DNA of 64,000 nucleotides from Trichoplax adhaerens. Taxonomy: Eukaryota > Animalia > Placozoa. A program made the translations under genes and the position numbers. Shown here piece after piece: positions 34,830-58,500 of this stretch. The number at the start of each line of letters is the position of its first letter. Positions within the stretch are counted from its first letter, which is position 1. The notes beneath the pieces were generated by a model, which worked only from the letters and a program-made list of their open reading frames with translations, made no database searches and was not told the DNA's origin. The DNA lies in contig NW_002060947.1 of NCBI RefSeq assembly GCF_000150275.1, forward strand, positions 4,206,335 through 4,270,334, given 5' to 3'.

Positions 34830-37800
34830 AGTGTAATTATCAACAACAGAATGGATTCGTTCTGATTGACTTCCTGGGATAAGTGTTAAATTAGGCTTAT
34901 TCGAACTACTAATTCCTGCTTGAACATAGATACCCGTTAGAACGCGAGCTATTAATAGTGTATTACCATAAGTGAGTGATGTTTTTGCACGGACAGCAAA
35001 ATAAGTTCCTGTTCCAAGCATAGAACCTATAGAGCAAAGTAATGTAAAAAAAAAAGTCACCTACCGTTAGAATGACTTGAACTAACCTTGAATACAGATT
35101 GATAGCTATAGGCTAATGATAACAAAATAAGGGAGATTGTCACACTATACTAACACTACCAATTCCATCTTGATCTAACAACGTTAAACGTCTTAATAAC
35201 TAGCACATACACTTTTATTTAAAGCGCGGAATAATACATAGCATTAGTGTTATACTGCTTTATTTTCATTTCTAAAAATGCTCATTATTTCTACTACAAA
35301 ACTGCATTAGAGTAATAGCTGCATATTTTCGATATAATAATCTCGAAATATGTTCGTTTAATTTCAACCTCTGTATACAATATCAACGATATTCAACGAT
35401 CTCTAAACATGTTAATTCATTTCGATTACAATTTACGACCTTTAACATCTTAATTTGCCGGTACTTTTATTATTTAAACGACAACATACTGTATTATGCA
35501 TTACAATACAGCGACACTAAATTTATTAATAACTTCAATTTAACTGTAATATATGACATCAATAGAGGCAAACTACGATAATATCTCCTCAAACACGTTA
35601 ATTTATTTAATTTGACTATCATTTAGACGTTAGTGGTATGTTGCGATCACTAAAGACGTTAACTAGTTACTTTTATTTCACTGCCTTACAAAATTAACAA
35701 ACTAGAGGAAATATTTTACTGTTGTACAGTACAGTGTTATAATTATCATAATAGTGAATGATACTATCTCTAAACATGTTCGTTCAGCTTGACTAGAATT
35801 GGCTGCTTCAACTTTATGTAACATACCCGCAAAGCTCTTTATTGCATTAATTGTAAGCGAGGTATATGATCTTAATGGTATATTGAGATACCATAATCAC
35901 GAAACATATTATCCGCCTTAACCTAGCCGTAATACATGATAGGGTATATTCGATGTTGCGACCTTTAACTACGGTAATTGCTTTAATTGAGCCCAAATAG
36001 ATAACCTAAATTGTAGTACACACTACGACCTTCAAATATTTTAATTACCTTAATTTATAATATAGGGTGATTAATGGCAGTAATGGTATCTGGATGTGTT
36101 GCAACATTGCGACCTTTAAACATCTTAACTACTTCAATTCGACTCTAATAAGATATTACCCGTTCTAGCTACTTCAGTGCAACTTATAATTACATTTATA
36201 CATGTAAATAACATTAGTCCTAGATCAACAGGACTGTATCGAAATATTGAGTCTCAACTAACCAAATGATTTTCCTGAGTAGTCCCTATCAAAGCCCCTC
36301 TTACATATACCATCGATATTCGATCCTGCTGTACCGTGAAACAACAGCTTCTCAACTGGAGTGCCAGGTTTGTATTTCCGGATTGCATTTTCAACATCTT
36401 TTTTCATGATTTGATAGCGACGATACAAATTCCAGTTTTGAATACGTGTTATATTGCGAACACGAAGCCCAGTGAATCCAAGAAGACTTGTAATTTCACT
36501 TATTTCGTGTTGATTAGTAACATCAACAGCGTGATAATAACCATTAGTTGTTTCACCCATTTCATCCCAATACGGAGGTACAGTGATCTCGTCATCTATT
36601 TACAATATTAGATTGATTCATGACCATTTAAAAGTTTTTAAACTTTTCAACCGTTTTAATGGACAAATTTATACTGGCAGATACCCCCATTTATAGTACC
36701 GTATTTGCTAATACGTAGATGAGAAAGAGAGATTGATTTATCGACATATCGTCATCCCTGTCAAAAGTAGAGAATCAAATCTACTGTATCTTACTCACCG
36801 GTTGACATAAATCTTCCTATCGGATACTGTTTTCCAGAAACTGTCATAATCATGTTTTCATAGTCAATCGATTTTATTCCTGAATCGACCAAAAAAATCT
36901 TATTGGTCTTATCTTGGAGATAGGTTTCATAATTTTTAATGAGGTCATAATTCATCTTACTATCAAATTTAAATTTGGATTGACCAATAATGGCATACCA
37001 GGAAGTAGTTTTAGCTATCGCTACTTGTACTTCGTTAGCGGCTTTTTCTTTCAACCGTGAAGCAAATAACTTATGAATAGCTGATATCGCATTTAAGATA
37101 TCGGCTTCAAATCCATGAATTTTTATCATTTTATTTCGATGGTAATAGACTAGGATTGTATTATATTTGCACCAAAATTGTAATGCTATATAATGCCAAC
37201 GATTTAGGTCGATATCGACGAAGTAATCTTCGTCAGTAATTTGGTGGCACCTCCAAGTATCAGCACAATCATTCACAATTGATCGCATCCGGTCTATTTT
37301 ATAGCGATTCTGAGATGCGTAGATAATTTTTAAACCAAATTGGGGGTTTGCCATACTAAAAGTTATTTCCCAATGCAACTTTAGCTTCTTAATCTCTTGC
37401 CCTATCCATGTTGCAATCTCTTCCACTCGATCTCTTGAACTTAAGGCAAAATCAACACAATTCAATCTGGTCTTATCATCTTCGTGATTAAACAAGAATA
37501 ATTCAATCGCAAAGAGTATCTGGTGGATATACTCCGCGTTTAATTCTATACTTATTAATGGGAATGAAACAGAACGATCACCACTTGCATTAATATAGCT
37601 TAATAACTGACCCACACCGGTTAAACAGCCATATGGACATATCTGATATAAGTTACAATTGAGTTGAAAATTTGGCAAACACTGCAAAGTTTCCAATGTA
37701 TGCTGAGAATTACAATTGTCCATAACACCATCTAATGTCTCTAATTTGCGATGTTGATCACATAATACTGTTAAATCAATAATGGCATCGCTTGTAGCTG

Positions 37801-40800
37801 CAACAATATTTCCATGATAGAGATTAACATATAATGGTTTATCATTAATATAACAGCAAGCGGTAAAGTACAGTACATAGCTACCGTTCGAGCTATTTGC
37901 AAGATTACTACTGCTACATTTTGTAACTAATTCAATCTCCTTGCGATCTGGCATTAAAACAGGTTGCATAGCTATTGGTGGTGTAGCAGGTATACTGTTA
38001 AATGATAGGAGAGATGATGATGACGGTGATTGAGTGGTAGTGACTAATGGCACAGTCTGATTTGGTGCATTTAATCCAGTTGATCGTTCATGTAATAGTC
38101 TTATAAATAGTTGTTGATGATTAATTTGGTTATCTAGGATAACAAAATAAACCGTCTTTAAGCAAATTTCTTCCTTAAGCTGCCGACTGAAACTAGATAC
38201 CACATCGATCATTCCTTTGATCACTTCATCAGCCTTTAACCGACTTCCACCAATTCCAATCATGGGTATAGCTATAGATTTCATCAATTCTATTTTGGCT
38301 TTTTCTAGGCAACGCGCTAACCCATCCTTTAGCCACTAGAATATAAAATTGATCATGAGAATACAATACTTTATTCATATCTCAATGGTTAATGAGCTTC
38401 GATATGAATTAGCTTAGCCTGCAGGAAGAATTATAATGATGAAAAATTTTACAGACTTACTGTGATCGATTTACTGGAACTTAAAAATGGCAAGTGATAT
38501 ACTTTTTTACATCCAAAATAGCTCCCACCAGTACTACCAATATCCTTGATACCTAGAAATTGTAACTGAATTTCACATTCAAGTTGATAACCTAGACCAC
38601 CAGCTTTATGTAATGCGGTAGCGATGGCGCCATCGTAATAGGATTTCAGCTTCATAGAATTGACGATAACATCAGCCTAAAGATGCAAGATAGCATAATA
38701 TAAATGAACTTTATTTATGTGTATAGCTAATTTCGCAAAGTGTAATTTGAATGAAGATATTTCAATATTTTTATAACAAAATTTTTAACATAATTATAAC
38801 TTTACGCACTACTCGCCCTTCTTTCTCGATACTTCCTATTACCAATTTAATAGCAACACGATCATTTATATTATCCGGCGTGGCTTTCTTAGGCAAAGTT
38901 GACGTTAGGGGTAGTTTATTTATAGGAGTATTAGGGATGACTGTTTGCGCGGATAATTCATTATTATTAGCGAGAATTAATTTATTTGATACTTTATCCA
39001 CATCAGATGTCGTCGTAGTTTGTAAATTACAACTTGCTCTACCATTAGAATCTATAACTTTCTGAATCTTTACTTCATTCCTTTTAACCTGGTTCATACG
39101 CTTTGAGCCCTTCAAATTGGTTGATATACTACTATAAATTATTAAAATATAGAAATTATATATGTAAAAGCAGCAAATTAAATTAGTGCTTGATATTAAT
39201 AATTGAATAATATCTAGTCATGCTAACATATTACAGAGACAATTTTTAATTTCTAATACTGATTGCAGATCAGTAGCTAGTAAAATTAAACTTGTAATAA
39301 TTTACGTAAATGTACAGCGCTATTATTAGTACTACAGTATACCGTACTCCAGTTAATTCATCATTTTCAGATGAGTGTGACGTACTCAAAAACATTGACG
39401 ATGAATTATCAACTACTACCAAAGCTTAAAGAAAAGAAGTTACTATGGGTAAAAAAGCAGCCGATGGAATTAAAATATGATTGCCAATATTCTCATAATA
39501 CCTAATCAGACCACAATCGATTTCTGCTATCGAACACGAATTAAATACAGTAACCGTTATAATCAATTAGTTCCTTAAAAATTCTGATGACGGATAACTC
39601 AGGTTTCAACAAGATTTAAAGAAATTGTGTGCAAGAATAGTCTTAGACTAAAACTTAACGTGAACTTGGTATTATAATTACCACTTCCATAACATCTAGT
39701 CAGATAACTTTCGATTGTAGATACTTATCGAATAACTGTTTACGAGAATAGACTGTAATAGCATTAACATTTCAATGATGTATTAATTAATTTTTATTAA
39801 TAATGCAATACGAGTATATGAAATATGAATCAGTAGTGAAAAGATTTTTATTATTATCAACATTTTGCCCATTTAAGGAATATTTACTAGCCGAATCGTT
39901 TTCTTAAAATCAATATGAGTCATTTATAACATAGAATATAGGATAGCAGTCTAACATCGATTTAGCAATAAATACATCTAGTTACAGTTTGCTAACTGAT
40001 ACCTTTGATCTTTATCGTCTAGAATGATAGTTATGCAGTCATTTTCATCTTGTAAAGATTTCAATCTCATCTGACAATGGCTTGATGTTAAAAATCTTCC
40101 CACCTTACAACCTGTACTAATAAACTGGTCCTCTTCAACAATAACTTTATTTAACAGCTTATAAATCTCGTTCATAATAGATTCTCTATTTGATGGATTA
40201 CATTGAACTTTAATTTGATGATGACAGATAGACGTATGCAGACACTTTTTCTCGTCTGCTTTCTCAAATAGGATAACGCAATTATACTGATTTTCAAGTT
40301 GAAGGATTTCATGCATCAAATGTAATCGCAAGTATTCTATTTTCAAAGCTGAAAAAAATATCCACCGCATAAAACATAGTGAATTACTTTTCGTTATAAA
40401 TGCGAAATAGATGCAAGTATTTTTAATAGAACTCTTACATACCTTGTTCAAGAGTTTTTTCCTGAAATAGCGCAAAATGATCCTGGAAATAGTTGCTATC
40501 AAGCGATTTTGTTTCTTTTGTATTAGAACTTAAAGACGGAGATTTACTAATATAACGTCAGTAAAAGACTATTAGTATCAACTGGTAAAAAATACCCGTT
40601 CATGTGAACGGAGGATGATTTTTGTTGGTTGGCATTCGCGGATATTAGAATTTAGATTTCTATTACTACGTGGCATTATTCATTCATTATTTCCTCGATG
40701 TACAGTACAACTCAATTTGTATTCACTAATTTTGTGTTAGATTCCTATCTGTGTCTAGCGTTATCCTTTTCCCACGTTGATGCTATGTGAATATACTGCC

Positions 40801-42964
40801 GTACAATAACCATCCTGCAATACCGTATGTTTAAACAATTATTATTATACAATTTTAGCTTAATTAGGATTTTATCCACTTTTAACGCTTGTGTTTTTTC
40901 ATTACGCTATCTATGCACTAATTCAATTTATGCCCATTCGATAGCGTGCAACGGAAACTTCATATAGTTTACATTAACCTTTGTTATTACTATATATGTA
41001 AAAAGTAGGGTACATTTACCATTAGAACACCACTATGATGCCCGAATCAATCATTACGTTGTATAATAATTAAAAAAACATGCGGCAGCAGTAGCTATAA
41101 ATCGGATTGTGCAGAAGTTTGCACACACAAAGCTCCATTATAATATGATGATGATGATGACGATATATATATGTAAGACCTTTACAATTTTACTAAGCAG
41201 CTGCAGAAAGATGTCGATTGTGCAGGAGTTTGCACACGCAAAGCTCCACTATAATACGATGATGATGATTATATAAGACCTTTCTAATTCTAGTAAAATG
41301 TTCGAAACTAATTTTAATAAAAATTTTCCCTTCTATTTCATATGTCGTAGAACTTGAAGATCGTAATTTGCTAAGATAAGGTTAGCAAACAACCTTAATA
41401 TCTATTTGCAAGTAAAATTTTGATAGTCTTTCTAAACTGATAATAACGATATAAAGCTGTAAATTTCATTTCCAGTCAATAATTACTGTAAGTTGCAGTA
41501 CAATCAATTTGTTCCACTCTGATTCGTATGTATAAAAAATTTAGAGTAGGCTTGCAAATACAATAATTTCAGTATCAATTCGTAAGCAATTTAAGCATAA
41601 TTCTTTTAATCTAATAAAAACTTGTAGGACGAAATGAATTTGGGGAGAATATTTACCTCTGATATTTAGCTGTTTTTACTACATCGTTGATTGTATCTGA
41701 CTGTTCACCTTTATCCCCATCATCTGTAACATCAAATTAACCATATTTTTAACTCTTTAATAAAATATTACCTAGCAATTTAAGAAGTATACAGTACCTT
41801 GAGTTAGTATGCTTTCTTCTTCTATCGATAACGGTTGATTTTGCATATTAGATTGTTCTGATTCTTGCGCATACTTTTAACGATATAAATTCGAAAATAT
41901 ACTCAATAATTTACTAGTTGAAGGTTTTCTTCAAGTTTGTTCAATCAATTTTTTTAATTTAGAATTTAGTAATGGAATATCGATGATCTCATCATAATGA
42001 GTAACTCTCTTTGATAAATTAAGGAATAAATTTCATTATTTAGCTGATAAAAAGATCGACGAATATCGATAACTTAGCCATACACAATAGTATGATAGTG
42101 ATGCGAAGCTAATACAGAAATAGTAATTCTAACCATAAAGTCTATCATACGTACACTTACTAGACTTTGATGACGATAGTAATTAGATGAATAAATTAGC
42201 CGGCTATTAGCGCCCTATCCTAAATGAGATTCCCTTACCTCAATCGATTGATTTTTACGGCTCAAAGTTCTATTTAGCAAATCGAAATTATGATTATCTA
42301 CTACGCATTCTTCATCGCTACCGCTATCGATAATAACGATGGGAGGAGATAGTTTTGAAGTAGTTTCGTGGTGATACTTTAACGGGCTATGCAGTGATAC
42401 TTTGGAAGACCGACATCGATTAGGCGATGGATGTAATGTTTGGATAGTCATTTGATGATTATTATCACCATCGATTACAATCACTTGATTGGAAAGCGTG
42501 TGAGATTTTGTTGTCTTTTTGCTGTCCTTCTTTTTTCTCTGTAAGAGATGGTTGGAATTACTCTTACTTTTATGGTGTTGTTTAGACCATGCATGGGATT
42601 TTTCGGTAGTCAATTCAATCGTATTTTGATCAACTAAGTTAACATAACCCGAAGTTGAAGGCATCAATTCGCCTCTTGATTGATCAGTAATGTTTGCATC
42701 ATCTAGACATGGTAATGGATCGGTTAGTAAGTCTAATCCAGATGATCTTTGATGCTGATATTGGTACGGATGGAGTCGTTGATAATTTGTAGTGGCAAGC
42801 GATTGGCTCCAACTATCACCATGTTTTATCTTCTTACGCTCTTGACAGTAGAAGAATTCTTCTGCTGCATCATGTTTTTCCTCACCTTGATCAGTCCATT
42901 CCTCAATGGATTTCAATTTTGTACTCTCTACTTGACCCGGAGCAGGATTTTTACAGGGGTTCAT
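34764..42964 (-). CDS. PARP14/15-like macrodomain-WWE mono-ADP-ribosyltransferase, multi-exon; linkage of exons upstream of ~39130 is tentative
   Basis: Macrodomain: IKLVIGSIEKE|ADVIVNS...GAIATALHKAGG...|SIAIPMIGIG (38789-39130, 38460-38676, 38336 downward). A degenerate second macro (VNLYHGNI...SVSFPLI), a KH-like segment (IKIHGFEADILNAISAI) and a WWE domain (SWY...FDSKMNYDL...IDYENM) follow. Catalytic domain: VPPYWDEM...RIQNWNLYRRY...LLFHGT...GFDRDYSG (~36271-36596) and GTGTYFA...ARVLTG...IFVV...AYPEY (34764-35027). Low-complexity exon at 42238-42964. Confidence 0.85.
41085..41290. repeat. Short direct duplication (~115 bp spacing) with (GAT)n tract
   Basis: gattgtgcag.agtttgcacac.caaagctcca.tataata.gatgatgatga occurs at ~41105 and ~41216. 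Confidence 0.8.
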
Positions 42965-45282
42965 TGGGTCTGTAATAAAGAAAAATACTTGAATAATTAC
43001 CCTAAATCAATACTGGGCTACTTACTGGAAGGCAGATACAAGAGTACAAGTATAAGAGTACAATGTTAGTTAGCCAGCAGATCGAATGAACTTCATTTGC
43101 AGTACAGGACAGTATAATTAAATAATTATTTTTAATTTTTCTCAATGTGTCATAACAGAAACATATGAAAACTAGTATTTCATTAGTTTCGATCTCTATT
43201 TATTTTTTCCCCCTAAGGATTGTCTACCTTGGAAGAATGCGTCACCATGGTTATTTTTTTTTACCCCTCCCATAAATATGAAATATATAATGAGTTTACT
43301 TCCAGGATCGCGTTTTACTGCTACTTATATAGGTAAAATGTACTATGATTAGTTACAATCTAAACTATAACTATGCACATCGTAGGCTAGATTGCGTCAT
43401 GACTTGTTTTCCTTTCCTCATTTATATTTTGCTTGTACTTGCTTATTATGCTGTGCCTGTGGGTGCGATCTACCGCAAAGTACAAAATTATCCAGCTTTA
43501 CCCCTTGAATAACAGTAGTATCCATCCATAATGGATTCCATACTGATCGCGGTGTATCTTAAGTTATTTTAGGTTATCTAAAGTTACACAAGCTATAAAA
43601 GTGCACATCGTAAAGTGCGTAATTATAGCTAAGGCCTAACTACTTGTAGAAGCCAGTGGAAATTTATACAACTTAAATGCGTCAATAATTTTACTACGGT
43701 AGACCAGAGTTTGTAGTTGTAGAGCATTAGAACGGACCACAGAACACAATTCTGTAAAAGATTCGCAGGATTGTAGTCATTCCTAATAAATATCTTCATC
43801 CATTTTAATCCAGTTAAATGAAAATCTGAATACCCAGATTGCCCAGCCTACTCAGTATAGTATCATTCACTGAGATGCAAAGGAGTATCGAAATTTTATT
43901 GACACTTTAGTCATTGCCACCGTCCATTGACATTTATGATAAAAAAAGGCATTTGGTTAAGTACGGACAAAGAAGTTGAGAAGTCTCCTATATCCAAGAG
44001 TCCTCCGGCTATTAAAGGTAGCATTTGTTGTAACCAAATCTTAAGATTGTATACTATATGGACTTTTCACCGTTGCGCTTCTCTGCTTCTCACAATTCAC
44101 AATAATATCTAAAATGAATCTCACACATGAGCTGTATTGACATTAGCCTACCTAATTATGGGCTCCGTATTGAAGCTGAGTGCCAATGTAGCATTTTAGA
44201 ACGAGGATAAATTTGATAATGTTGACTCTCTCACGCAGCAGCTATGGTGTGTAGTTCAAGGGTTTCAGATATTATTTCCTATAGTACCTGCTTTTCGAAG
44301 TTAGTAAAATTTAAATCCTTCGTTACTCTCAAATTCCTCAATTATGCATTATAATTTCGTTTCCGAATAACGTTACTGTTATATATCTGAATCTTACACT
44401 TAGTTAATGTTAGTATATGTTCCCCACGAAAATACATAGCAGTTACAATCTTAATATATATGTATTTAGCGTATCATATGCATACCATTTGCAATATTAG
44501 AAATGGAATACTTAAAGAATATAATGGAAGTTAACGCAACTATAGATCATGTTATTGCTCTTTGATTAGATATCAACAGATAAAGTCTTGCGCCTTCATC
44601 TTTAACGTAAGCTGAAAACTAATTAATCCTTTTCAACATTAGGAGTGTGTCGAAGCTTAACTCTTGCAACCGTATAATATTCCAACAGTCAAGGCAATAA
44701 AAAACTTATAAGGTGGTAAAATTTTATAGAAATTTCTTTCCAGTTGCACTTTTCTTTAAATGCAATGCACTGACAGATAGGATTTCGACCTACTTTCAAT
44801 CCACTGGTTGAAATGATTTGGATAAATTCGTTCATTTTTATTAAGACATTAAAAAGACCACAATTATAGCTCGGCTATAATATCAGTATTCTGTTATCAA
44901 TAAAACGCTCATTTTTCATGACTATTAACAAATACCTTTGCTACAGTAGGCTTCTTTTAAATAAAAATGCTAACATTTCACGAGTAACAACAAATACACA
45001 TGTTATTAGTACAATATTATAAATAAAAATACTTCAATTTGCATTATTATTTACAAATAGGCATGTTGTTGCATAAAGCTTTAAAAATGAAAATGCTTCA
45101 ATGTCACCATTTTTAAGGTTAACAGATAGATAGAATAGATCATGAAAGAGTATCATCATATGTATCATACATTATTTCTATTTTGTAGTATTGCGGTTAA
45201 TAGCAATTTAAATAAATAGTAGCCAGGAAAAGAGAAATTCCACACCACTAGGGTGGACATGCCCTAATAAAAATATGACTAT

Positions 45283-48200
45283 TTACAATATATTACAACA
45301 TTGGCTAACATGAGGATTAGACGTTGTCCTTGTACGTGGCAATGCAGAAAATAGCGCATCTTCAAAAATTGAAGATCCTATCGAAATATTGTCATATGGA
45401 TGGAAACGAATATGATTTCCAGAATGACCACCACCATTAATATTGTGATGATTGGTATTATTATGATCAGCATTAGTGCTGGAATAATGATTACTATTAT
45501 TATTAGGATTAGGCGAAAGATTATTCGTGGAATCATTTTGATTATCTAGTGAATTGCCGGATGTTATTTGTTCATCGCTCAGTTTAACATATTTATTGAT
45601 TCGTTCAATAATCTCCGAAAATTTCTCGCGTGGCGATAGATTTCTACCTTTACCTCCATGACCACCACCTTGGCCGCTCATATCGATGTAAATAAGTTGA
45701 GAAAAGCTAATAGCCATTGCACCTGGTGGTGGCCAATCGACCTTTTCCAACATGACAGGCACAATCGGCTTACCTAACATATCAGCTAAAATAATCTCTT
45801 TACTACAACTACTAGAAGAGACATACTTGGAGGTTACACATGCAATCACTAATTGGGCCTCTTTGATACCGTCGTAAATTTTTTGATATAGAATATCACC
45901 GCCACCCATTTGACCAATATCAATCCAACATTTATAGCCATACCTTCCTAATCGACTACATAAGGCTTTAGCTTCAGCTTGATGGTCCCATTGATAGCTG
46001 ATAAAAATTTCTGGTGAGGGTGTATCGGAGCGGACAATGTTGTTATTATTACTGTCTGAATTTTGAACGATACCTTATGATTGAAATTGAGCGTAAAAAA
46101 ATAATTGTAAGCTTATTTAATGGTATTGATACACTCTTAATATTCCTTCCAAATCAGTTTCAATCATTTAGTTAACGATCACAATACAGCTATCAAACAG
46201 AAGTCAACCTATACATTTATTTCGTGTTCGTTGTAATTGAAATAGAACATGAACTAAAATTCTAACATGACTGATTTCTTATTAGTATATACTCTATTAT
46301 AGCATACCTTTATTAATCTCAATTTCCTGCATTATGTGCATAACATCGTCGCGTTGTATTGACTGCAATATTTGATATAAATCATCGATGGTATTACTTT
46401 TACTCCAATCATTCAATATTGCATGTGCAGGATCTGCTGTTAAACTCCAATTACATATATCGATCTCACTATAGCCCATTTTTCGAGCCAATGTGCGCCA
46501 ATTAGCTTTACCAGGTAAAGTTAATAAATCGGTAACTTCATGGGGCCATTCAAATTCTTGTTCATTCTATCAATTTATTAATACATATGTTAGCTACTAG
46601 TTCTAATATGGAAGTCAATGAATGATAGTTTAATTATTTTAGATTTTTTCCAACATATACGAACTACATCATTAATTGTATCTATATCAAGACTTTAGTC
46701 ACTATAAATAGGTATAAAATAAATACCTTGCTACTGGACTTAATTAAGGATCCTAAGCTTTTCTTGTCTAGATTAAACACGGTAATAAAAAAAGCAATAG
46801 AAATTTAGTTATTACAAAATAGTGCCGGTATATTAATGATTGTATATTGATTAGCACTTATGTACGTCGATATCTAAAGATTTTAACTCTCAGTGGTCAA
46901 TATAGAACAACCTTTTTTAACTTCAGGACAAAACCACTTTTTATATGGTGCTGTACGAATTCTTCTATGATCACAGAGGACCAGCTAAAAAAATGCAATT
47001 TTTATGACCGTTTGATGACATATGTATAAAGATCTCTTCAATATTATATAAAATTCTTATGAATATAATCAAAAAGATGACCGTAGGCACAGCGTATTGA
47101 TTTATGGTTTAATTGATAATATTCCGAAGTAATAATCTCTTTTAAAGTGCAAAATAAAAATTTGTCATTAGTACTAAGCTAACCTTTGCAGACTTGCAGA
47201 GTTCTAATTCATGAAAATGCAAACACTCTTCTCTTTGACAACCATTAATGTTATGTTTTTCACATAACTTGTTGCATGTACAGGCTACAACAATTTGATA
47301 ATTAAGGTGACGGATCCAGGCTTTACGCAAGTTAGCCAATGTCGCTTTAACAAACTGCAAAACCTGTAAATAAAGTATTTAAATAAGAACTGTATATATT
47401 TCGGTGTTAATACTATTTACAGAGACTAATATATTTGCCAATCTTTTAATGAAATCATACCTTTGTACATGCTTGTCTATTTACTTCAATAACAACTCCT
47501 TCTTCCTCATCATCGAAGTTTGCTCGTTGGACAACAACCTATTAGTAAGGGTGTCATACAGGGTATCATTTATAGGTTAGGATTTACTTCTTATTTATAG
47601 TGAGCCAGACTGTAACAACAAAAGCATCTATTGTAGCCATTAACTGGTACATTACAAAACTATTAACCTTTATTCGTGCAAATCGCATAGGTGCTCGATG
47701 TAGTATAAAATCATGATCTTCATCTAAATAAAATCGAGCACAGTTATTATATAAATAAGGCTCTCGACCACCACATTCTTGTGTCCATCTAACGACATGC
47801 ATTAATAAGCGATTATAAAATCCATCTGGCAGAAATCCGTCAAAGTCAACATAGAACGATATATCCCAGTTATTATGAATGTAGATATCTTCAATCCTCT
47901 TGGGATTTTGCAACCGTGATGGTAAATAATACGTATTTCCACATTCCGCATAATCAGTACAATCAGATGATCCCTATAAAATAAGAATAAATTTAAAAAT
48001 AAGATAGTAAATAAAAGATGACTGACATTTAGGTAGAAATTGATAAAACAGCTAATGAAAGATAGTTATTTATTTTCTTAGGTGCTATAGTGAATTTGTT
48101 GGACCTTTCGGGGAATTAATCGACGACATAGCAGATCAAACGATTCCATTAAATTTAGTAACATTGATTTATGATCGATGATATCACCCCACATATAATT

Positions 48201-51200
48201 GATTAAATCGTCAGTCAATATTCCTCGTTTATTAAGTAATTCTAATGAATTCGATTTCATGGAAAACTGAAATAAGATAAGAACAAATTTCAAAATAGAT
48301 ATTTATAAGCTTTAAAGTTTCATCATTACTAAACAATTGAGTTTATGTTCGTTAACTAATAGTCAAAAATATGATTACATTTTATCCGTAATTATACCAA
48401 TCATGTACTAACGTTATTGCCTATGTTTTTCAAAGTTAAAATTTTAACAAAAGAATCAGCCAACCATAACGGATCAAGAATAACAGTAATATTGTTGGAT
48501 GTATTCCCGACTGAATCTTGATAGTGTACAATATTGCCAAGATCGTGATAGTATTGTAACATGACTTTAATAGCAGATCGATCGATAATATGCGATTCCG
48601 ATGCAATTAACTGATAAACCTAATAATACATAATAATTTTTAGTATGAAAAAGATTAGTGCGCAAAGATAATATCATCCGTATCACAAAATGAATAATGT
48701 TATTGTAGTAATGAAAATATGCTATAGATATGGTACAGTATTTGTCAATGCAAGAGTAAAAAAATGTGACAGCACTGGTAAATCGAGTTACAGTACAATA
48801 TTATTTATGTATCTATTGAATTTAAAAACTATTCAAATGGCTATTTATATAACCTTAAAATAATTATTATCAATCGATAATTATTGTTTGATTGTTATAT
48901 TTCTTTTACGCAATTAAAACTATGTTCAGTCTAGTCTTATTAGTTAATCAATACTAAATTTAATTATACTTATTAAACGCTCACTGAACTGACATAAATA
49001 TTCTTATTCCAAGAAATACTACCTTATCGTCTAGACAATAAACCTATTTACTTATTTATTTATTAATTTGTCCGCAGAAACGGTGTCAATAACCATACAC
49101 AATTCAGCTATAAGTCGATTTTAATCATGAGCTTAATTGCTTTAGCACTGACCTCATCGGATGATATTAAATGCTTTCCTTCTTTCGTCATTTGTCGAGA
49201 TAGGCATTCAAATTTTAGCCACTGGATCGGTATCTTTTCACTGATAAAAGGTTGTGATTCTACAGCATTGTCGATGCTTTGAATAAGTTTGGCCAACTAC
49301 ATAATATCATAAAAAAGAAATCTTATTTAAATTCTTTCCATGACATTAAATCCACTGTTCTCATCAAAAAATAAAATAAATCTATTAAATTGCGAACATT
49401 TTTTTACTTACCTCCTCGTCTTGATCATCATCTAATTGATCATCAATTGCAAAAAATATTGGGGCCATATGCCTAGCGTAAGGTTTACCCCGTAGGTTTT
49501 CCTGTATCCTATCAAATCTATAGTTTATTAATTTGTTACGTTCCTAATAGGAAGCAAAGAATTGTCGTTAGAAAGAGCTTATATTCTATCATATCTCAAT
49601 GGCCTTTACATTAATAATAATACAATCAAAAATTTTAAATATGCTCTTAATTTTTTATTGTTGGAGGTTAGCTATTATTTACCCGAATATAAACAAAATA
49701 ATATTACATACATTTTTCGACTTACTGTGATATTACTACCAAGTTTATTCTTGTTAATGCCAATGATAAATACGGTAGGTGTTAGAAGAGTAGCTTTACG
49801 ACTGGGGTTTTGACCAACAGCGCAAGAGTAAATGGAGCTCATCCAGTATAAAATAAAATCCAGTACACATAATTCATTTCCCTCCTATCAAAAAATTTAT
49901 AATTTGAGTTAAACTTCATATGCATTCACTTAAAGTTTTTTGTGTCAGGGACTACTAAAAGAAGTAGTCTCTGTTAGTATGGATATATAATTAAATAAAA
50001 AATAAATTAAAAGTAAATTGTTCACTACGAATGTCGATTCTAATTAGTACAATTGTAAAACGACTAAAGTTTAATTTTAGACACTATACCGATTCTTCAA
50101 TATCTTCGGTTAAATCGAAAGCGATGATATAGATTGATTTATTGTTGCAAAACATCTACATTATCCAGATAATAATAAAATGGAAATTAATAGCTAATAA
50201 GGGGAAATTTCTGATTTAGAGTGAACGATTAAATATAGGAAGTGCAACGATGGTTTCAAAAGTTTGGCGATCGCAATTAACTTACACGATAAGATAAATT
50301 GTGTATAGGTTGTCCACTTAAATCCCAGACATCATGAGTTTTTAAGATCTCCTCATTGGGCTTAACTTCGATATTATTTTTTTCATGATTATCAATATCA
50401 CAATTTTCAATCATTTTGCATACAATTTGTTTCATTGTAGGGGCTAAGCTGTTTAATATTGCTTCATGCTGTTGACTAGCTTGCAGGGTCGAATCGGAAG
50501 TTTGTAATTCCTTCGACAAATGCCAGCTAGGAGAATAACTTGGTTCATCTTCAATATCACAAATATCATGATCGTCAATATAACGATCTTCGTCATTGAC
50601 ATTCATATTAGATTCATCAATATCTTGATTATCGATTATACTTTCTAATTTGGTAACAATGCTTTTAGCTAATGCTTGATCTAGTTGTTCTTGAATTTTT
50701 TCCATTTCATCTATTTTAATTGACAATAAAATCATAATTGAGAATGTACTATAGATGAATTTCGCTATACCGCATATTTAAACAACGAAAGGGGCAAGAC
50801 TTCTGAGTGTCAATACTGCATCATCATTTTAGGTATTGATTATAGCTATTTTACATCTTTATTTATAACAGCATGATAGGTTACCTTCTATGGTGGAAAA
50901 CGAATATTTCTTATCCAAAGCATCTTTTCCGCCTTCTTCTACTAAAGGACTTAAATTACCTTGACCTAAAGTATCAAAATTGTTCATTGCGAAAATTTTA
51001 AAAACAAACGAATTAATTACAATAAATATTTAGTAGATTTAACAGTTCCATGTACTTTATAACTTTTAAGCTACTTGTACAGAGAAATAACGTAGTTATA
51101 AATATGATGTAGATATGTATTACCTTTCAGGATTTTACTAATTGTTTGTCGGGGAAGCTGATCTTTACTTAAGATTACAAAGCGAATTCGACGAACATTT

Positions 51201-54200
51201 CGACAATCAAACTGTGAAGCTTTATTATATGCTGCAATAGCATCTTTACCATGTGCTAAAATTTCCGGTGGAACTTATGGTTTGACAGAAGAGCGAGAAT
51301 GATACAAATCAGAAAATTGGATAATATAGATTTTGATCAATGTCTATGTAGTTCTATAGCAGGGAATATTTCAAGAAAAAGCTTGCATTTCTTGAGTAGT
51401 CCCTGTTTAAAGTACTATCAAGCAAATAAAACTTTAGTCTATTCGAACAGTACCAAATACGATATTAAAGAAAGTAATGAACATTTATGGTAAACTTCTA
51501 TCCGTGCACGTTTGATAGGGAATAAAAGATCTTTAAATAATATCGCAGATGTTTATTGTAATAAAAAAGATACTACCGGTAATTGTTGCAAAGACATTAT
51601 TCGCTAGGCGTTTCTTTATTTCATTTACATTTAATCTAATAATTTACATTATAGTTTCAACCTATATCTAAGGAAAACCTCTATTACGATCGTTAACCAT
51701 ATCTCTGGTTTGGATTAACTTACTATTTTCATTCCCTTCCGGCACGATGGTAGCACAATCACAGTTACCATACAAATTAATAATGCCATAGACGTTATTA
51801 GTAACATCCGTAGCTATCGCACCTAGAAAGACAAAATAAGCAGTATCGTTGGAAAATGCATTAAAAGTGTAAAGTAGTTCATAGTTATATTTAATTAATT
51901 TGTCAACTCGGATTTTTCAGCGGCACCATAGTTAATCAAGTACATAAACTATTTCTCTGTCCTAACTGTTACTCTAATTAATAATTATCAATCGGTATTT
52001 TGCTTTAGATAGATACAATCTCCAGTATAAGTACGCCATATTTAATTTGAGTTATACCTATACTATAACAAATTAGTAAGGTATGATGTTTCATAGCAAC
52101 AGCTACTTAACTCATCAATCAATATTTACTTCCGATAAGCAATATTATTAGGTCAAGTTAATAAGCTTCGCGTGAATATTATCATGTGCAGCTACTACAT
52201 ATTGAATTGTAATAATTGCCAAATGTTGTACGAGAATTTTCGATTTGATTTAGTAATAGAGTGTTAACGTGTTTACTATTCGCTTTGTAAATTATACTTT
52301 TATAACGATTCCTCATTAAAAATTTCTAATTTACCAGAACTTTATGATAAATGTAATCATAAAGTTACGTTCTGAAATATATCTCAAATGCCACATGAAC
52401 GTAAAATAATTTATGCCATCTCAGTCCCCACTACCGTAAGTTATGCTTTAACGTACGATAAATATAGATTATTTCATAAATGTGAGAAATTAACCTAAGT
52501 CATTGCCATTAATGTACGCATGAACATGACCATTTGTCTTTCGACTAATACCAAAATAATCGCCCATCTTCAAAGAATGCAATCCTTGATGATGGCAGTA
52601 ATTTTGACATTGACCATGGACATAAAGATTTTTATCGCTGAGAATCCAATTTGGAGATTGTTGTATTCCTACTAAAGAGCGGGGGAATTGTAAACTGGTT
52701 GGTGATGCAGTTGTTAAACCAATTTGTAAGTTCCCATTCCATCTTGTCATAACATTGTCAATTCTTAACTGAAATAATTCATTATCTTGTAAAGGACGAT
52801 TTGTCATAAAAGTAGCAGCATCGAATTGACTGACTGCATTTTTACGGCTAGCAATCGTAAAATCGGACGATAACATGCCATTTAATCCATGTCTAGAATA
52901 AAAAAGTAAAGGAGTTCGGGGATTCGAAGCTGAAAGTAAAAATAAAGGCAAATAGATATTAAGAGAAAGGCGATAATCAGTCAATATTAATCTCTTTTTT
53001 AGCTTCATTGATATTTACCATTTCACAATATTGCTATTACTACAGATTCCTTTTACATTTAAAGTTTACGGAGAAGTTGTAGCAATCAAGTATTAGAATA
53101 TTCTAACGTATAAAATTTATTAGAAGAAAGATTTACCTGCAGGCTGTTCTCCAAGATAGTCTATCCTTACTTTACAATCGCCAATAATTGTTGATATCAT
53201 AGGATAAAGAATTTTTCCTTGTAGTCCGTGAAAGGCAATCCCTAGGTTAACACCATTAACTTCGTAAGATAAAGTTCCTCTATCCATATCTAAGATAACG
53301 CAAAATTTCTTAAATCTAGATAATTCTTGATTTAATATGTTACTGCCATCTTCGCCATCTTGATTCTGGTTATGCAAATGATTAAGCATCGGGTAATGGC
53401 CTTGTTCAATATTTGCATGTATTAATACTCTTTTGCTGATATTCCATCCCCAACTATTAGTACTACAACCAATTAGGCTGGTATAGCCTGTACAATGCAG
53501 ACACTCTTTCTTGTTACCAACACCGGCAACGGAATGAGATCCTAAAAATATAGGTATAAAATCATACATAGGATCAATTAAAAATTCATCCCAATAATTA
53601 AGAGCAATTTCTGTTTGAAACTGAATTACTTGATTAGTTAATAAATTAAAACTTTAACTATATTACTTTAGCATTTCCTTAAGCAATATTAATCATGATC
53701 AATCTATGGTCGTTATATCAAAATGATTCAATATATCTTAGAACTACTCTATACCAGAGCCGATAGTAAATAGGCCACTCTTGATTCAAAATTGATCAAC
53801 AAAATAGATTCACAGTAACATGAACTAGCAACATTATTGAAAGACAAGGACTGAAGTAAAAATTTATATGTATGGTATGTTTTATAAAGAGAAAAGATTA
53901 CATGATAAATAGTGATACTATGTTTATTTGATATCATCAAATAGAGATTTGCGACCATTTCTCAAGAATAATTCATCAATTCCACTATGTTCATTACATG
54001 TTTAATATATGGTATTAAAATGACTAGACTTTAGAAGACTCGATTTACGTATGTGCATGCTGATCATTGATTAATAAATGACTGAAACAGATTTGAAAAT
54101 CGAAGCCTTAAATTACAGCAATCATAAAATGTAATTTATCATCGCCATTAGCAGAAAGAAACGAAGTACAAAATGACAGTAGTGTTAACATAACAAATGG

Positions 54201-55583
54201 ATTTACCATAGCAAAATACACATTACTCGTATAATGATGCATGCAATGGTTAATAATTTACGAAAGATAACGTATGTAAATTAACGTTTTCGTATATGGA
54301 GTATGACTGATTCATAATTATTATCACAACAGACTTAATCTATTGATTGTGATATCGGGTATGCTATATGTATTGCCTAGAAAGATTGAAACTAACTACT
54401 ATGATTCGTTAATTCAAATTTAGTAGCAGTAATTTACAGTGATACCACTCCAACACGTTTTCGGGATAGGGATAATTACGTTCAAAACTGAACTTGATAA
54501 TAAAGCTATTCAGGATCAAATAGAGGACGCAGATGACATAAAATCTATTTTTAAGATAGAACTCAGCAAGAAATTAACGGAAAAGATACTAACCTAAATC
54601 TCCTTGCCATGTTAATTGCCAAACATGTCTACCATTCTCTATGCTTCGATTACATCGAATAGCATCAGTTGATTGGACTGCTTTCTGCCTCTGACAAGCA
54701 TGAAGATCATCGTCCAGAACATGAATATTAACTGAACAATCATCTGGATTCCATGTATATAGATTGGCCATTTCTTGACCTGGCCGACGGTTGCCTGATG
54801 ATCAATAATTTGAGTAAATTATGAGGATAGAATATCTTCATGAATTAATGTCCTTACTAAACGACATACTATATGAATTATTATTAGCTTAATCAAAGCT
54901 ATCCTGAAATAACAGGATAGTTCATAATGCTTTAGGATTACTTTGTTAAATACTTATTTAAGGTTACCAAGAATGACAGTAAACTTACCAAGATAAATGA
55001 TTGAAACTTCTGCATTGCCATAGACTTCGCTAACCATTGGATAAAGAGATTTTCCAACTAGCCCAGTACAACAGATACCAAGATATTTACCCTCAGCTTC
55101 AAATGCTAATGTTCCATTTTCCATATCCAGATAGACTATAACTTCACTCGGTGCTTGGTAATCAAGAGCCATAGACGGATAGCAAGTTAATGATTTCTTT
55201 CCTGCACTATAGCTAATCTTGTTAGTAATATCCCAGCCCCAAGCGTTAGGGTCTTGCTCAATTAATGTTGTGTAACCTTTACAATGTAGTATGGCTTCTT
55301 TTGAGCCAACACCTGCTACTGCATGGCTACCTCGTGGAGTTAACCATTTTAATTTCCAAGCATGATGGCCATGAGTATAGCCATATCTACCTCTAATAGC
55401 ATCGGTTGATCGACGAGCTGGCCTTCGATAAAAGGTTAATGGGTCATCGTCTTTAATGTAAATATTTTTGGAATGATCTGCGGGATGCCAAGAATGAATA
55501 ATTTCCTGATTGAGTTCATTTTTACAAATCGAGTCGTGTTTATCACCATGGCGGACGACATGATCACGACTAGTTGTTACCAT
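45283..55583 (-). CDS. Roco-family multidomain protein: SPRY-SPRY-NHR(neuralized)-Roc(degenerate)-COR-Death-TIR, ~19 exons
   Basis: SPSB-type SPRY1 (54989-55583; HSW...STDAIRG...GSHAVAGV...LDMENGTL...LYPMVSEVYG). SPRY2 (54594-54796 plus 53138-53541). NHR (52496-52929 plus ~51724-51822; FMTNRPL...LRIDNVMTRWNGNLQIG...VYGIINLYG). Roc (51124-51273 PPEILAHGKDAIAAY; WDLSGQ ~50310; IYIIAFDLT ~50120; YWMSSI...VFIIG ~49765-49850). COR (KIPIQWLKFE; YYHDLGNIVHY...ILDPLWL; YYLPSRL; FLPDGFYNRLL). Death domain (~46305-46566 NWRTLARKMGYS...LQSIQRDDV). TIR (45283-46073 IFISYQWD...CWIDIGQMGGGD...CSKEIILA...IVPV). Splice phases are consistent at most junctions checked; the one near 51640-51720 is ambiguous. 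Confidence 0.82.
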
Positions 55584-58500
55584 CTTTCTTTTTTCTCCTT
55601 GGAATAATATAAAAGTAATCTTTACTTTAAGTTGGCTTAATAACAGTTGGGTAGCTAGAGCTAAATTTTAATGAAGGAAAAAGTAACGAATAAATTTATA
55701 GCTATAATATATGCCAACATTACGGGAAGAAAAGTTATAACTTCGATAATGACACATATAGGTGTACAGCAGTAGTCCGGAGTCATAAAATTAAAGAAAT
55801 TTGCTAAAGAAAGGGTGAGGTAATAACTGCCATTTTCACCTTCCTTTTAGTAAATCATTATCTTATAAATGCCCAATTTTCGGCTACTGTACGTTAAATG
55901 TCACTTTAATAGACTTTAATAAAAATGAAGGATAAACTCATTAAGTGACCTAATAAATATTATTAAAATAAACCAATTATAGAAATGAAAGAAAAGCTTC
56001 TAAACAGTCTTATGAAAACAATTTTATAAGGAGAATTTTAATAAATCATTAAAAATGGAAAATAAGACCTGAAATTAATTTAAATTTTTCCTGCTTATTG
56101 GATTATAAACATGGTTGAATAATATTCCCGTACTACTTATTTTTCAATATGCATATTAAAATTCATATTAATAAACGATAACAAAACTTATCGATCATGA
56201 ATATAAAGTACGTATATAAATCTTGGGGTATTTTCGAAGGATATTAGGGAGAATTTAAAGAGGGATCAATAACGAGATTTTTCTCACATACGTATAGTAT
56301 AGTGCACGGTACAATTGTCTATTGTATCTCTATCCATAAAAATGTCAACTATATTATTGTATATGGTCTTTAGATTCTTTACTGAAGTTAAATTCAATGA
56401 TTCATAGCACAGGATTTAACTATGTTAAGGCAAATGAAAGATTCTTCGGTATAAAATAAAAATGTTCAATTCTCGAGTACCGGTAGCTTAAATCTTCAAT
56501 CGGTTTTATGCCTCTATTATTAGAGTCATAATTTCTTTAGATTATTCTTACTGTGAGTATAGGAAATTACTTAAATTAATTGAATAATTTCAACTAGAAA
56601 AAGCTTTTCTTTTTTTTCTCGATCTAAACTTTAGATAGATCTATGCAAAAATTTCTACTGCGTTGCTACTAACTGCTACGGGATAAGCTTTATATGATCT
56701 TTAATAGAATTTCATCGCTTCCTTAAAAGATGCCTATTTCGTTTATCTTCAATACATATTTGCTTCATACCACCTTCATATATAGAATACTTTTGATTAT
56801 AAATAAATGATTAGTAATTTTACCGTCAATTCTCGACAAACTTTACGGGTAATTTATCAAAGATTTACTGCAGGACAGTCTTTAGTGTTGTGGGGGTCTA
56901 GAAAAGGAGTTATTATAAATACCCTTTAAAATAGTGTGATAAGCTGCTTAAATTTATCGACAAATAAACCTAAAGTCAGATTTTTATTAATAATGTTAAT
57001 AAAAAAAATTTTACAAACGATATAACAACCAAAACTTTTGCAGTTAGTGTTATAATTTCGACAAAACCTTTATGACTCTAGTAAGAGAAGTAGTAGTATT
57101 TAATTAATAGAAGCTCCGCTGTACAGTATATTTCACGTCCTACACATATACGTGTATCATACTTATTATGGATAACTTTTGCAAGTATGTTTATTTTGAA
57201 GAGGATCACATTAACTTGAGAAGATATGAAGTTCTCTTAAGTAAGCTGACAAATGTCTAAAATTCAACATCCGTTTGCAAAAATAACTGAAAAGCTATCC
57301 TTATTAGTTTTAAAACGCACAAGTACGGTATAATACGTATTAAGATTAAGGTATCGTTTTAATGCTAGTCTATATAACGCCTATTAATATAACATCAGCA
57401 TTGATCAACTAGAATATTACGTTAATATTTTTCTTACCTCTTTAGAAAAAAGCGGGGTTTTAAGGCAAGCTGTTATCGAAAAATATTCTAGTTGGATTCG
57501 ATAAATAATGTTTTTTGCTGTATTTGATCTAAGCCTCTAAGATTAGAAAATGATACCAAAATTACTCGCTAAGTCACTGAATTTTTCTAACGAAATGATA
57601 GGTCCTTCACTTTAAAGTAATAGTATTTATTATACAATTAAAAATATCAATGTTTCTATGTTGTTATATGCGATTTTAAGGGTTTGAGCATAAAGTTGTA
57701 ACAAACATTAGGATGGATTGTTACCTTTTTTAGTGTAATGCATAGAATTTATACATACTACAACCTACCGTAGGTAAGTTTATTAAACTTATTTCAATTG
57801 GCCATTTTTAAGGTTTAAAGTAATGTTGATGCTAACGAATAACCATGGAAAAGAGCTTTAATGAACGATTTTAATAGTAAATTTAGCTTGTTTAAAAGTC
57901 CAATGACTCTTTAAATGTTAATGTAAGGCCCCATCGCATAAGCTATAGTAATATTGATAGAATTTTAAGTCAACAAGCATTTCTAATCGAAGCAAATTTC
58001 GATGTAATATTGTAGATAGTTATTAGGTAGATGTAATTGCCTTGGTAAAAGTTATGTGATACTTGCTGTATTCGCAGGGAACGTAAAATGAACGAGATAA
58101 TAAGAATAAACATTCAGTAGTACTTTACCTTAGTAGTTTAGTTGTTAGAATATGGCAGCGCAGAGACAAGAGTCAACAAATAATTGTTGTATCAAGTAAT
58201 CATGCAATATACAGTAAAGATAAACCGATCCGGAGAAAATAGGAAGGAAATAATGACAGCTCGTAAAGAAGTAAAATAAAATTTTACAAGAAAATTTATA
58301 TATATCTGCAAATTAAGATATGGAATAGCGTCAAAAAAGAATGTATATAATTTAATATGGCAGATGGCTTCCCGACATATTCGACATGTCTACGCAATGG
58401 CTTAAAAATTGAATACTACCTTAGTCCTTTACAATTTTAGCTGTATGGGACAACAGTCTAGTACAACTACTAAATATGATAATATCTAGTTAACTACTTC

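Follow-up and report, generated by a model that had tools for sequence, protein, structure and literature searches.

Can a Roc domain be kept as a structural part of a protein after its nucleotide-binding motifs are gone? In LRRK2, the Roco protein linked to Parkinson's disease, and in its relatives, binding of guanosine triphosphate (GTP) by Roc is treated as essential for stability, for the dimer cycle and for output. We analyzed a 64,000-nucleotide stretch of the Trichoplax adhaerens genome (contig NW_002060947.1, positions 4,206,335 to 4,270,334; hereafter the window), in which a multi-exon gene on the minus strand raises this question. The original prediction, made from the letters of the window, was that the Roc domain of this gene has lost its phosphate-binding loop (P-loop) and serves as a noncatalytic scaffold. 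Our preferred reading, to which we give a probability of roughly 65%, is that the exon in question opens a Roc-derived G-like domain of a class-i-type pseudoGTPase, that Roc-COR would form a fixed structural or dimerizing hub, and that both belong to a single intact gene maintained by selection. The pseudo-GTPase part of this reading is well supported at the sequence and evolutionary levels.

We drew the gene model from genomic sequence together with the orthologous contigs described below and ran all domain, Protein Data Bank (PDB) and database searches exon by exon; the secondary-structure elements of the Roc-like domain were assigned from alignment alone. The window is AT-rich (~31-33% GC) and the introns are short. 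The predicted domain order is SPRY, SPRY, Neuralized (NHR), Roc-like, COR, Death and SARM1-like TIR, and the gene is present in a single copy in the genome. The Roc-like domain is encoded as follows (positions in the window):

51124..51273, minus strand: Roc-like exon 1, with the pre-G1 motif PPEI..G..AI..Y, strand 1 (IRFVIL), the dead P-loop SKDQLPRQT (51169-51143) and helix 1 (ISKILKG).
50885..50965, minus strand: Roc-like exon 2, where helix 1 ends and switch I (..KYSFSTIE) follows; orthologs share 85-92% of its amino acids, and the splice sites are conserved.
50286..50710, minus strand: Roc-like exon 3, an acidic insert followed by strand 3 and G3/switch II (DVWDLSGQ, with WDLSGQ at 50327-50310).
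50090..50155, minus strand: Roc-like exon 4, strand 4 (SIYIIAFD); its amino acids are 100% identical in every ortholog, and 7-9 synonymous differences separate the codons.
49726..49884, minus strand: Roc-like exon 5, holding helix 3 (LDFILYWMSSI), strand 5 with a ~10-residue inserted loop ahead of it, and a degenerate G4 at 49767-49741; 94-98% identity in orthologs.
49412..49543, minus strand: Roc-like exon 6, which completes the G-like domain on its C-terminal side (..PIFFAIDDQ..); 91% identity in ortholog contig L010, splice sites conserved.

The 50-residue peptide on which the prediction was built is real, and its SKDQLPRQT loop was placed exactly (51143-51169). Its outer coordinates had been given as 51124-51273; the peptide is read from 51122-51271 of the minus strand, a shift of 2 nt, and 51124-51273 translated as it stands runs into stops in both orientations. 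The codon for the last Gly of the peptide is divided between two exons, with G at 51124 and GT at 50965-50964 of exon 2. A stop codon immediately precedes the open frame of exon 1, which contains no in-frame ATG; exon 1 is therefore not the first exon and needs to be spliced to an exon upstream.

For the state of the G motifs, we compared these exons with three multi-exon paralogs of the same genome that carry canonical motifs. Two of them (L003 and L004) read ..PPPEI..G..AI..Y.., followed by KLMMVGLGGAGKT, WDFAGQ and GTHCD, and the third (L006) reads KLMFVGLQNIGKT, WDFGGQ and GTHFD. MAFFT aligned exon 1 with the canonical paralogs without a gap, and in the place of GxxxxGK[ST], where their aligned strings are VGLGGAGKT and VGLQNIGKT, the window gene has SKDQLPRQT, as had been proposed. 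From GxxxxGKT to SKDQLPRQ, all four consensus residues are replaced (G/S, G/P, K/R and T/Q). The claims that G3 survives and that G4 is degenerate also held. The DxxG of G3 is kept in WDLSGQ, which aligns with the WDFAGQ of L003 and L004 and does not vary among the orthologs. At G4, the IIGINKNKL segment places GINKN opposite the GTHCD of L003 and L004, with loss of the specificity Asp; a shift of one residue gives NKNK, and Asp is absent in both registers. The G2 Thr of switch I in exon 2 is apparently kept, judging from a by-eye alignment to ST(V)G of L006, and no G5 motif is recognizable in exon 6. The residues for nucleotide binding whose absence marks class i pseudoGTPases are thus missing here, namely the four of G1 and the Asp of G4. 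Loss of both P-loop glycines (the second to Pro), replacement of Lys by Arg and loss of the G4 Asp make canonical GTP binding by the Roc-like domain very unlikely.

The domain also contains two insertions. Exon 3 carries an acidic, probably disordered insert of ~110-115 residues between switch I and strand 3 (50708-50370, minus strand), a position at which the intronless Roco paralogs of the genome have long inserts as well. Relative to L003 and L004, exon 5 has the inserted loop VGQNPSRKAT (49818-49789, minus strand), which is invariant in the three lineages compared below and faintly Walker-A-like.

A wrong gene model, with a canonical P-loop contributed by an alternative or missed exon, would undo this reading, and it gains some room from the shortness of exon 1 and from a model that rests on genomic sequence. 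We scanned for [GA]xxxx[GA]K[ST] in all six frames of 44000-58000 and in the ortholog contigs read in gene sense (plus strand). Neither in these 14 kb nor in the contigs was there an alternative Walker A exon, including the GxxxxGKT exon that the original prediction had named as its possible undoing, save for the string GEQPAGKS (53152-53129, minus strand). This string belongs to the tail of the second SPRY frame, which two stop codons close shortly afterward; it lies 1.9 kb upstream, ahead of the NHR domain, and we judged it a chance match. Exon 1, moreover, is flanked by a conserved AG and GT whose phases match in all lineages. A missed exon is therefore very improbable, and none able to supply a canonical P-loop is predicted from the sequence.

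That the domain is Roc-derived at all had to come from motif-level and profile comparisons, since the paralogs are too diverged for a tblastx comparison of the gene with four paralogous loci to return anything significant. With hhalign, the three orthologous sequences matched L003/L004 at E = 1.6e-5, and the segment from PPEI through strand 1 was in register. Built from the mixed exon 1 alignment, a profile matched Methanosarcina barkeri Roco2 (PDB 4WNR) and LRRK1 over 49 gap-free positions from pre-G1 to helix 1; because that profile contains the paralogs, the match supports the register, not homology itself. The proposed register of pre-G1 motif, strand 1 and helix 1 is thereby upheld. Farther along the domain, the tail of the G3 exon matches L003 (BLASTP E = 2e-4), as does exon 5 with helix 3 and strand 5 (E = 4e-4), and the intron after G3 falls 8 codons past GQ in the window gene, L003 and L004 alike. 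COR-A follows the G domain: Pfam PF16095 matches at 48404-48619 with 40.2 bits and E = 3.9e-10 (cut-off 35.3), a second piece matches with E = 0.015, and the PDB search returned 4WNR, the RocCOR of M. barkeri Roco2, with E = 0.005. The first COR-A segment is 94% identical in L010. These comparisons support the assignment of exon 1 as the probable N-terminal part of a Roc-like domain ahead of COR.

To measure selection, we used orthologs found by a word search with exon 3, which gave two proteins at the level of open reading frames with 74% and 70% identity. Their contigs come from the Logan assemblies SRR30664515-17 and from a marine-biofilm metagenome (SAMN08714533 / SRR6854575), and with the window they make three lineages; exon 1 and exon 5 profile scans of metagenome contigs from the Joint Genome Institute (JGI) gave no more orthologs. 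The contigs L010 and L011 (ENA ERZ23499115, SRR6854575) are orthologous, placozoan-like animal sequences inside the biofilm metagenome, and metagenomes of this kind are a source of uncultured placozoan sequence.

DNA similarity between the window and the orthologs is limited to exactly the modelled exons. All AG/GT splice sites and phases are conserved in the three lineages, the split codons differ only synonymously, and the Roc exons show zero indels across lineages (141 codons for exon 3). Over the final 24 codons of exon 1, a stretch that spans strand 1, dead loop and helix 1, no lineage differs in amino-acid sequence: there are 7-8 synonymous differences and no nonsynonymous one (Fisher p, 1.3e-5 and 2.0e-6). 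By the Nei-Gojobori method, the ratio of nonsynonymous to synonymous divergence (dN/dS) was 0.015-0.026 for the G-domain core (dS 0.5-1.3), 0.06-0.09 for all Roc exons (dS 0.5-1.6) and 0.11-0.16 for exon 3 with its acidic insert (dS 0.6-1.5). Synonymous divergence from the window to the other two lineages approaches saturation, and the ratios for those pairs are therefore approximate. The other two lineages compared with each other (dS ~0.5) gave the same picture.

The gene is under strong purifying selection and is maintained, being the product of neither chance nor decay. The intact frame had originally been taken as a sign of maintenance, and the open frames, the conserved splice sites and phases and a dN/dS of 0.015-0.09, with ~0.02 in the G-domain core, bear this out. 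A decaying pseudogene could explain the lost consensus motifs and the missing Pfam Roc match, but it is extremely improbable in view of the open frames, the conserved splice sites, the absence of indels and a dN/dS of 0.02-0.09 at dS of at least 0.5 in three lineages. Because the replaced loop is itself invariant across lineages, it is constrained and may have a new role, which is different from mere loss.

Several observations weigh against a Roc-derived pseudoGTPase. No exon matched Pfam Roc (PF08477) at E <= 1, and the window domain is not among the 151 Pfam Roc matches at E <= 1 in the genome scan. Searched by itself, exon 1 matches no paralog significantly by BLAST and nothing in the PDB, where it drew only a chance hit to a designed TPR protein (E = 0.5). 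The selection analysis spans three lineages with near-saturated dS toward the window, and the gene model is built from genomic sequence. Finally, the invariant replaced loop, the kept DxxGQ and the probable switch I Thr would fit a ligand-binding pocket too.

The lack of a pairwise match between exon 1 and a paralog could mean that exon 1 is a helical, TPR-like linker, that strand 1, P-loop and helix 1 have been lost wholesale and that an in-register replacement is over-read. The weak outside matches of exon 1 are indeed all TPR-like: beside the designed protein, its profile picked up, among 1.84 billion representative proteins, four repeat-type matches in several stretches (E ~1e-4) and no relative, and TPR clusters of the ESM Atlas scored 0.88. 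The last fall under the reliability threshold of 0.9 and were treated as spurious. These TPR-like matches, however, span only the AIAAYNKA helix, whereas hhalign places PPEI..G..AI..Y in register with the paralogs and the spacing of motif, strand and helix is gap-free against the paralogs, MbRoco2 and LRRK1. We accordingly hold a TPR-like linker to be improbable.

A second alternative is that the Roc-like domain binds a nucleotide, guanine or other, in a noncanonical way, as an atypical switch or a class ii/iii pseudoGTPase. Such binding would use Arg in place of the P-loop Lys, the Thr that follows, the switch I Thr and DxxGQ. It would account for a replaced loop and a switch II that do not vary in three lineages and for the retention of the G3 DxxGQ, and it could draw on the invariant, Walker-A-like GQNPSRKAT of exon 5. 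Against it stands the loss of both P-loop glycines and of the G4 Asp; the second glycine has become Pro, which cannot give a backbone NH to a phosphate. The Walker A likeness of exon 5 is also nonsignificant (a PDB match to the SMC1 Walker A region at E = 1.5), and the inserted loop, which connects helix 3 to strand 5, is remote from the canonical pocket. On balance, we consider noncanonical nucleotide binding unlikely.

The same residues could have been put to a different use. In a repurposed Roc pocket, the SKDQLPRQT loop, the switch I Thr and DxxGQ would make a site for a nonguanine ligand or a partner, for instance a nucleotide signal from the protein's own SARM1-like TIR, and Roc-COR would still be a conformational switch, only re-wired. 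We give this idea little credence; if true, the Roco/LRRK2 family would gain its first re-wired switch. Alternatively, the invariant loop and switch II may have a structural role at the Roc/COR-A interface.

A Roc-derived pseudoGTPase remains our preferred reading, and we asked how exceptional it is in its own genome. The 105.6-Mb assembly (1414 contigs) contains at least 50 COR-A matches, many of which lie in open frames of ~700 aa that lack introns. Among 40 further COR-A loci surveyed, three could not be scored and 33 carry G....GK[ST], mostly as GPxNVGK[ST]. One locus (L012) has GKA at the P-loop. Another, L040 (C1396:1059362-1062072), combines GPSDSGKN with WEFGSK, and the tandem pair L050 (G000:C1391:708454-711209) and L051 (C1391:662578-665321) combines GPNHEDKS with WNFNNH in two open frames whose dN/dS against each other is 0.32. 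The frames of these three degenerate loci are open and ~545 aa long. Their partial degeneration implies that G motifs have decayed more than once in this Roco expansion. The window gene is the only surveyed locus without any of the four G1 consensus residues, and on this survey its P-loop loss is a rare one that selection maintains. The canonical paralogs L003 and L004 have the architecture LRR-Roc-COR-...-TIR; between two LRR blocks upstream of their Roc, we observed an EF-hand-like loop (D.D.NG.LD..E; L003 3460-3560, L004 2956-3050).

The remaining parts of the window gene, in the order of translation, with the Roc-like exons falling between the NHR and COR-A lines, are as follows:

54957..55583, minus strand: SPRY 1 exon (Pfam SPRY PF00622, E = 2.9e-10, 40.7 bits), with a probable start ATG at 55583 and an approximate 3' boundary.
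53123..54801, minus strand: SPRY 2, in two open segments (54801-54592 and 53653-53123), splice sites approximate.
52493..53014, minus strand: main exon of Neuralized (NHR) (Pfam Neuralized PF07177, E = 1.3e-23, profile positions 1-119 of 149).
51724..51826, minus strand: C-terminal piece of NHR, ending at the phase-1 donor A/GTAAGT.
48081..49296, minus strand: COR-A region, with Pfam and PDB matches, in segments 49296-49111, 48619-48404 and 48302-48081.
47145..47973, minus strand: probable COR-B region, in segments 47973-47587 and 47378-47145, assigned by its position after COR-A and by the by-eye pattern YLPSRL ... FLPDGFYNRL.
46300..46566, minus strand: Death domain exon (Pfam Death PF00531, E = 2.7e-13, 50.3 bits, cut-off 22.6).
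45283..46074, minus strand: TIR exon, which ends in a low-complexity tail and the stop codon at 45285-45283 (Pfam TIR_2, E = 1.2e-23, 84.3 bits).

In the second SPRY domain, segment 53123-53653 matches Pfam SPRY with E = 1.6e-6, and segment 54801-54592 looks, on visual comparison, like the N-terminal portion of the first SPRY exon. We joined the NHR-end exon to Roc exon 1 because its donor and the acceptor of exon 1 are both phase 1 and the two exons adjoin in an orthologous contig. There (L007), the NHR-end exon has 91% amino-acid identity and the same donor and lies 584 nt upstream of exon 1; the read-through sequence past the donor is not conserved. Upstream of Roc, SPRY and NHR domains thus stand in place of LRRs, and only the LRR-Roc linker motif PPEI..G..AI..Y remains. 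COR-B is the half of COR that dimerizes. The probable COR-B region is single copy in the genome, and its segment 47587-47973 matched nothing in Pfam or the PDB, the latter giving zinc-finger noise only. The only solved relatives of the TIR exon are SARM1 TIR chains, with a weak match (E = 1e-4). In SARM1, the KEI segment holds the catalytic Glu. The KEI of the query falls on it in the alignment, with Glu at the aligned position, which makes NADase competence of the TIR domain plausible.

Elsewhere in the window, an exon of an unrelated neighboring gene at 20577-20990 (plus strand) matches Pfam Tmp39, a putative transmembrane protein 39, with E = 4.8e-10. Open frames of 174-498 aa at 10976-13378, 36791-38287, 39978-40502 and 42215-42964 (all minus strand) had no Pfam match at E <= 0.001.

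How might a protein of this composition work? In our preferred reading, G1 and G4 have been replaced in register, with switch II (DxxGQ) and the core strands kept, GTP would no longer be bound or hydrolyzed canonically, and Roc-COR would act as a nucleotide-independent scaffold, not as a switch timed by nucleotide. The SPRY and NHR domains, placed where other Roco proteins carry LRRs, are probable sensors of ligands or partners, and the Death and SARM1-like TIR domains probably provide a cell-death or innate-immune output. Roc-COR would couple the N-terminal sensors to this C-terminal output; regulation would have moved to SPRY/NHR, and Death and TIR would be held in a fixed geometry. In the bacterial Roco protein studied for its monomer-dimer cycle, the nucleotide-free state is reportedly the dimeric one, and by this analogy a permanently nucleotide-free Roc-COR is expected to be a constitutive dimer. 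That study reports a monomer-dimer transition during GTP turnover (PMC5714945). A constitutive dimer would agree with the original proposal, in which Roc-COR dimerization independent of nucleotide controls the effector domains.

A natural Roc that lacks G1 and G4 and is under very strong purifying selection offers a ready-made test of a nucleotide-independent Roc-COR scaffold. The same gene could help to tell which parts of Roc, such as switch II and the core strands, serve structure and which serve catalysis. It would also add an undescribed architecture, with B30.2-type sensors, a pseudo-Roc-COR, Death and a SARM1-like TIR, to the NLR-like Roco receptor repertoire of an early-branching animal. 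A pseudo-Roc would place the Roco family among the G-protein families that have produced pseudoGTPases.

Compared with the solved Roco proteins (M. barkeri Roco2 4WNR, Chlorobium tepidum Roco, LRRK1 and LRRK2), the window gene shares the spacing of pre-G1, strand 1 and helix 1, the DxxGQ and a COR-A that follows the G domain. Unlike them, it has destroyed G1 and G4 motifs, SPRY/NHR in place of LRRs, no kinase and a large acidic insert between G2 and G3. DAPK1, which has a kinase and ankyrin repeats, likewise couples Roc-COR to a C-terminal Death domain, and its canonical P-loop binds GTP. The window gene differs from it in the dead P-loop, the lack of a kinase and the additional TIR. A review of the Roco family gives G1-G3 as the conserved Roc motifs (PMC6337361). 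For T. adhaerens, passages of an earlier survey report at least 17 Roco genes that combine Roc-COR with CARD, Death, TIR, TPR and LRR (Civiero et al. 2014, PMC4104024); the passages of that survey retrieved by term search mention neither a SPRY/NHR-Roc-COR-Death-TIR architecture nor a P-loop loss. In a survey of placozoan immunity (PMC6321704), a term search met none of the words ROC, COR, SPRY and SARM, and the literature searched yielded no paper joining Roco or Roc-COR with a pseudoGTPase or a degenerate or inactive Roc.

Close parallels lie in other G-domain families. The class i pseudoGTPases AAGAB (its psGD) and p190RhoGAP (pG1/pG2) are likewise G-domain derivatives without G-motif residues that are kept as protein-interaction modules (PMC12490416, PMC5593906); their failure to bind nucleotide has been shown biochemically, whereas that of the window gene is predicted from its sequence. 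On the output side, SARM1 uses its ARM and SAM domains for regulation and oligomerization, and the window gene has Roc-COR instead.

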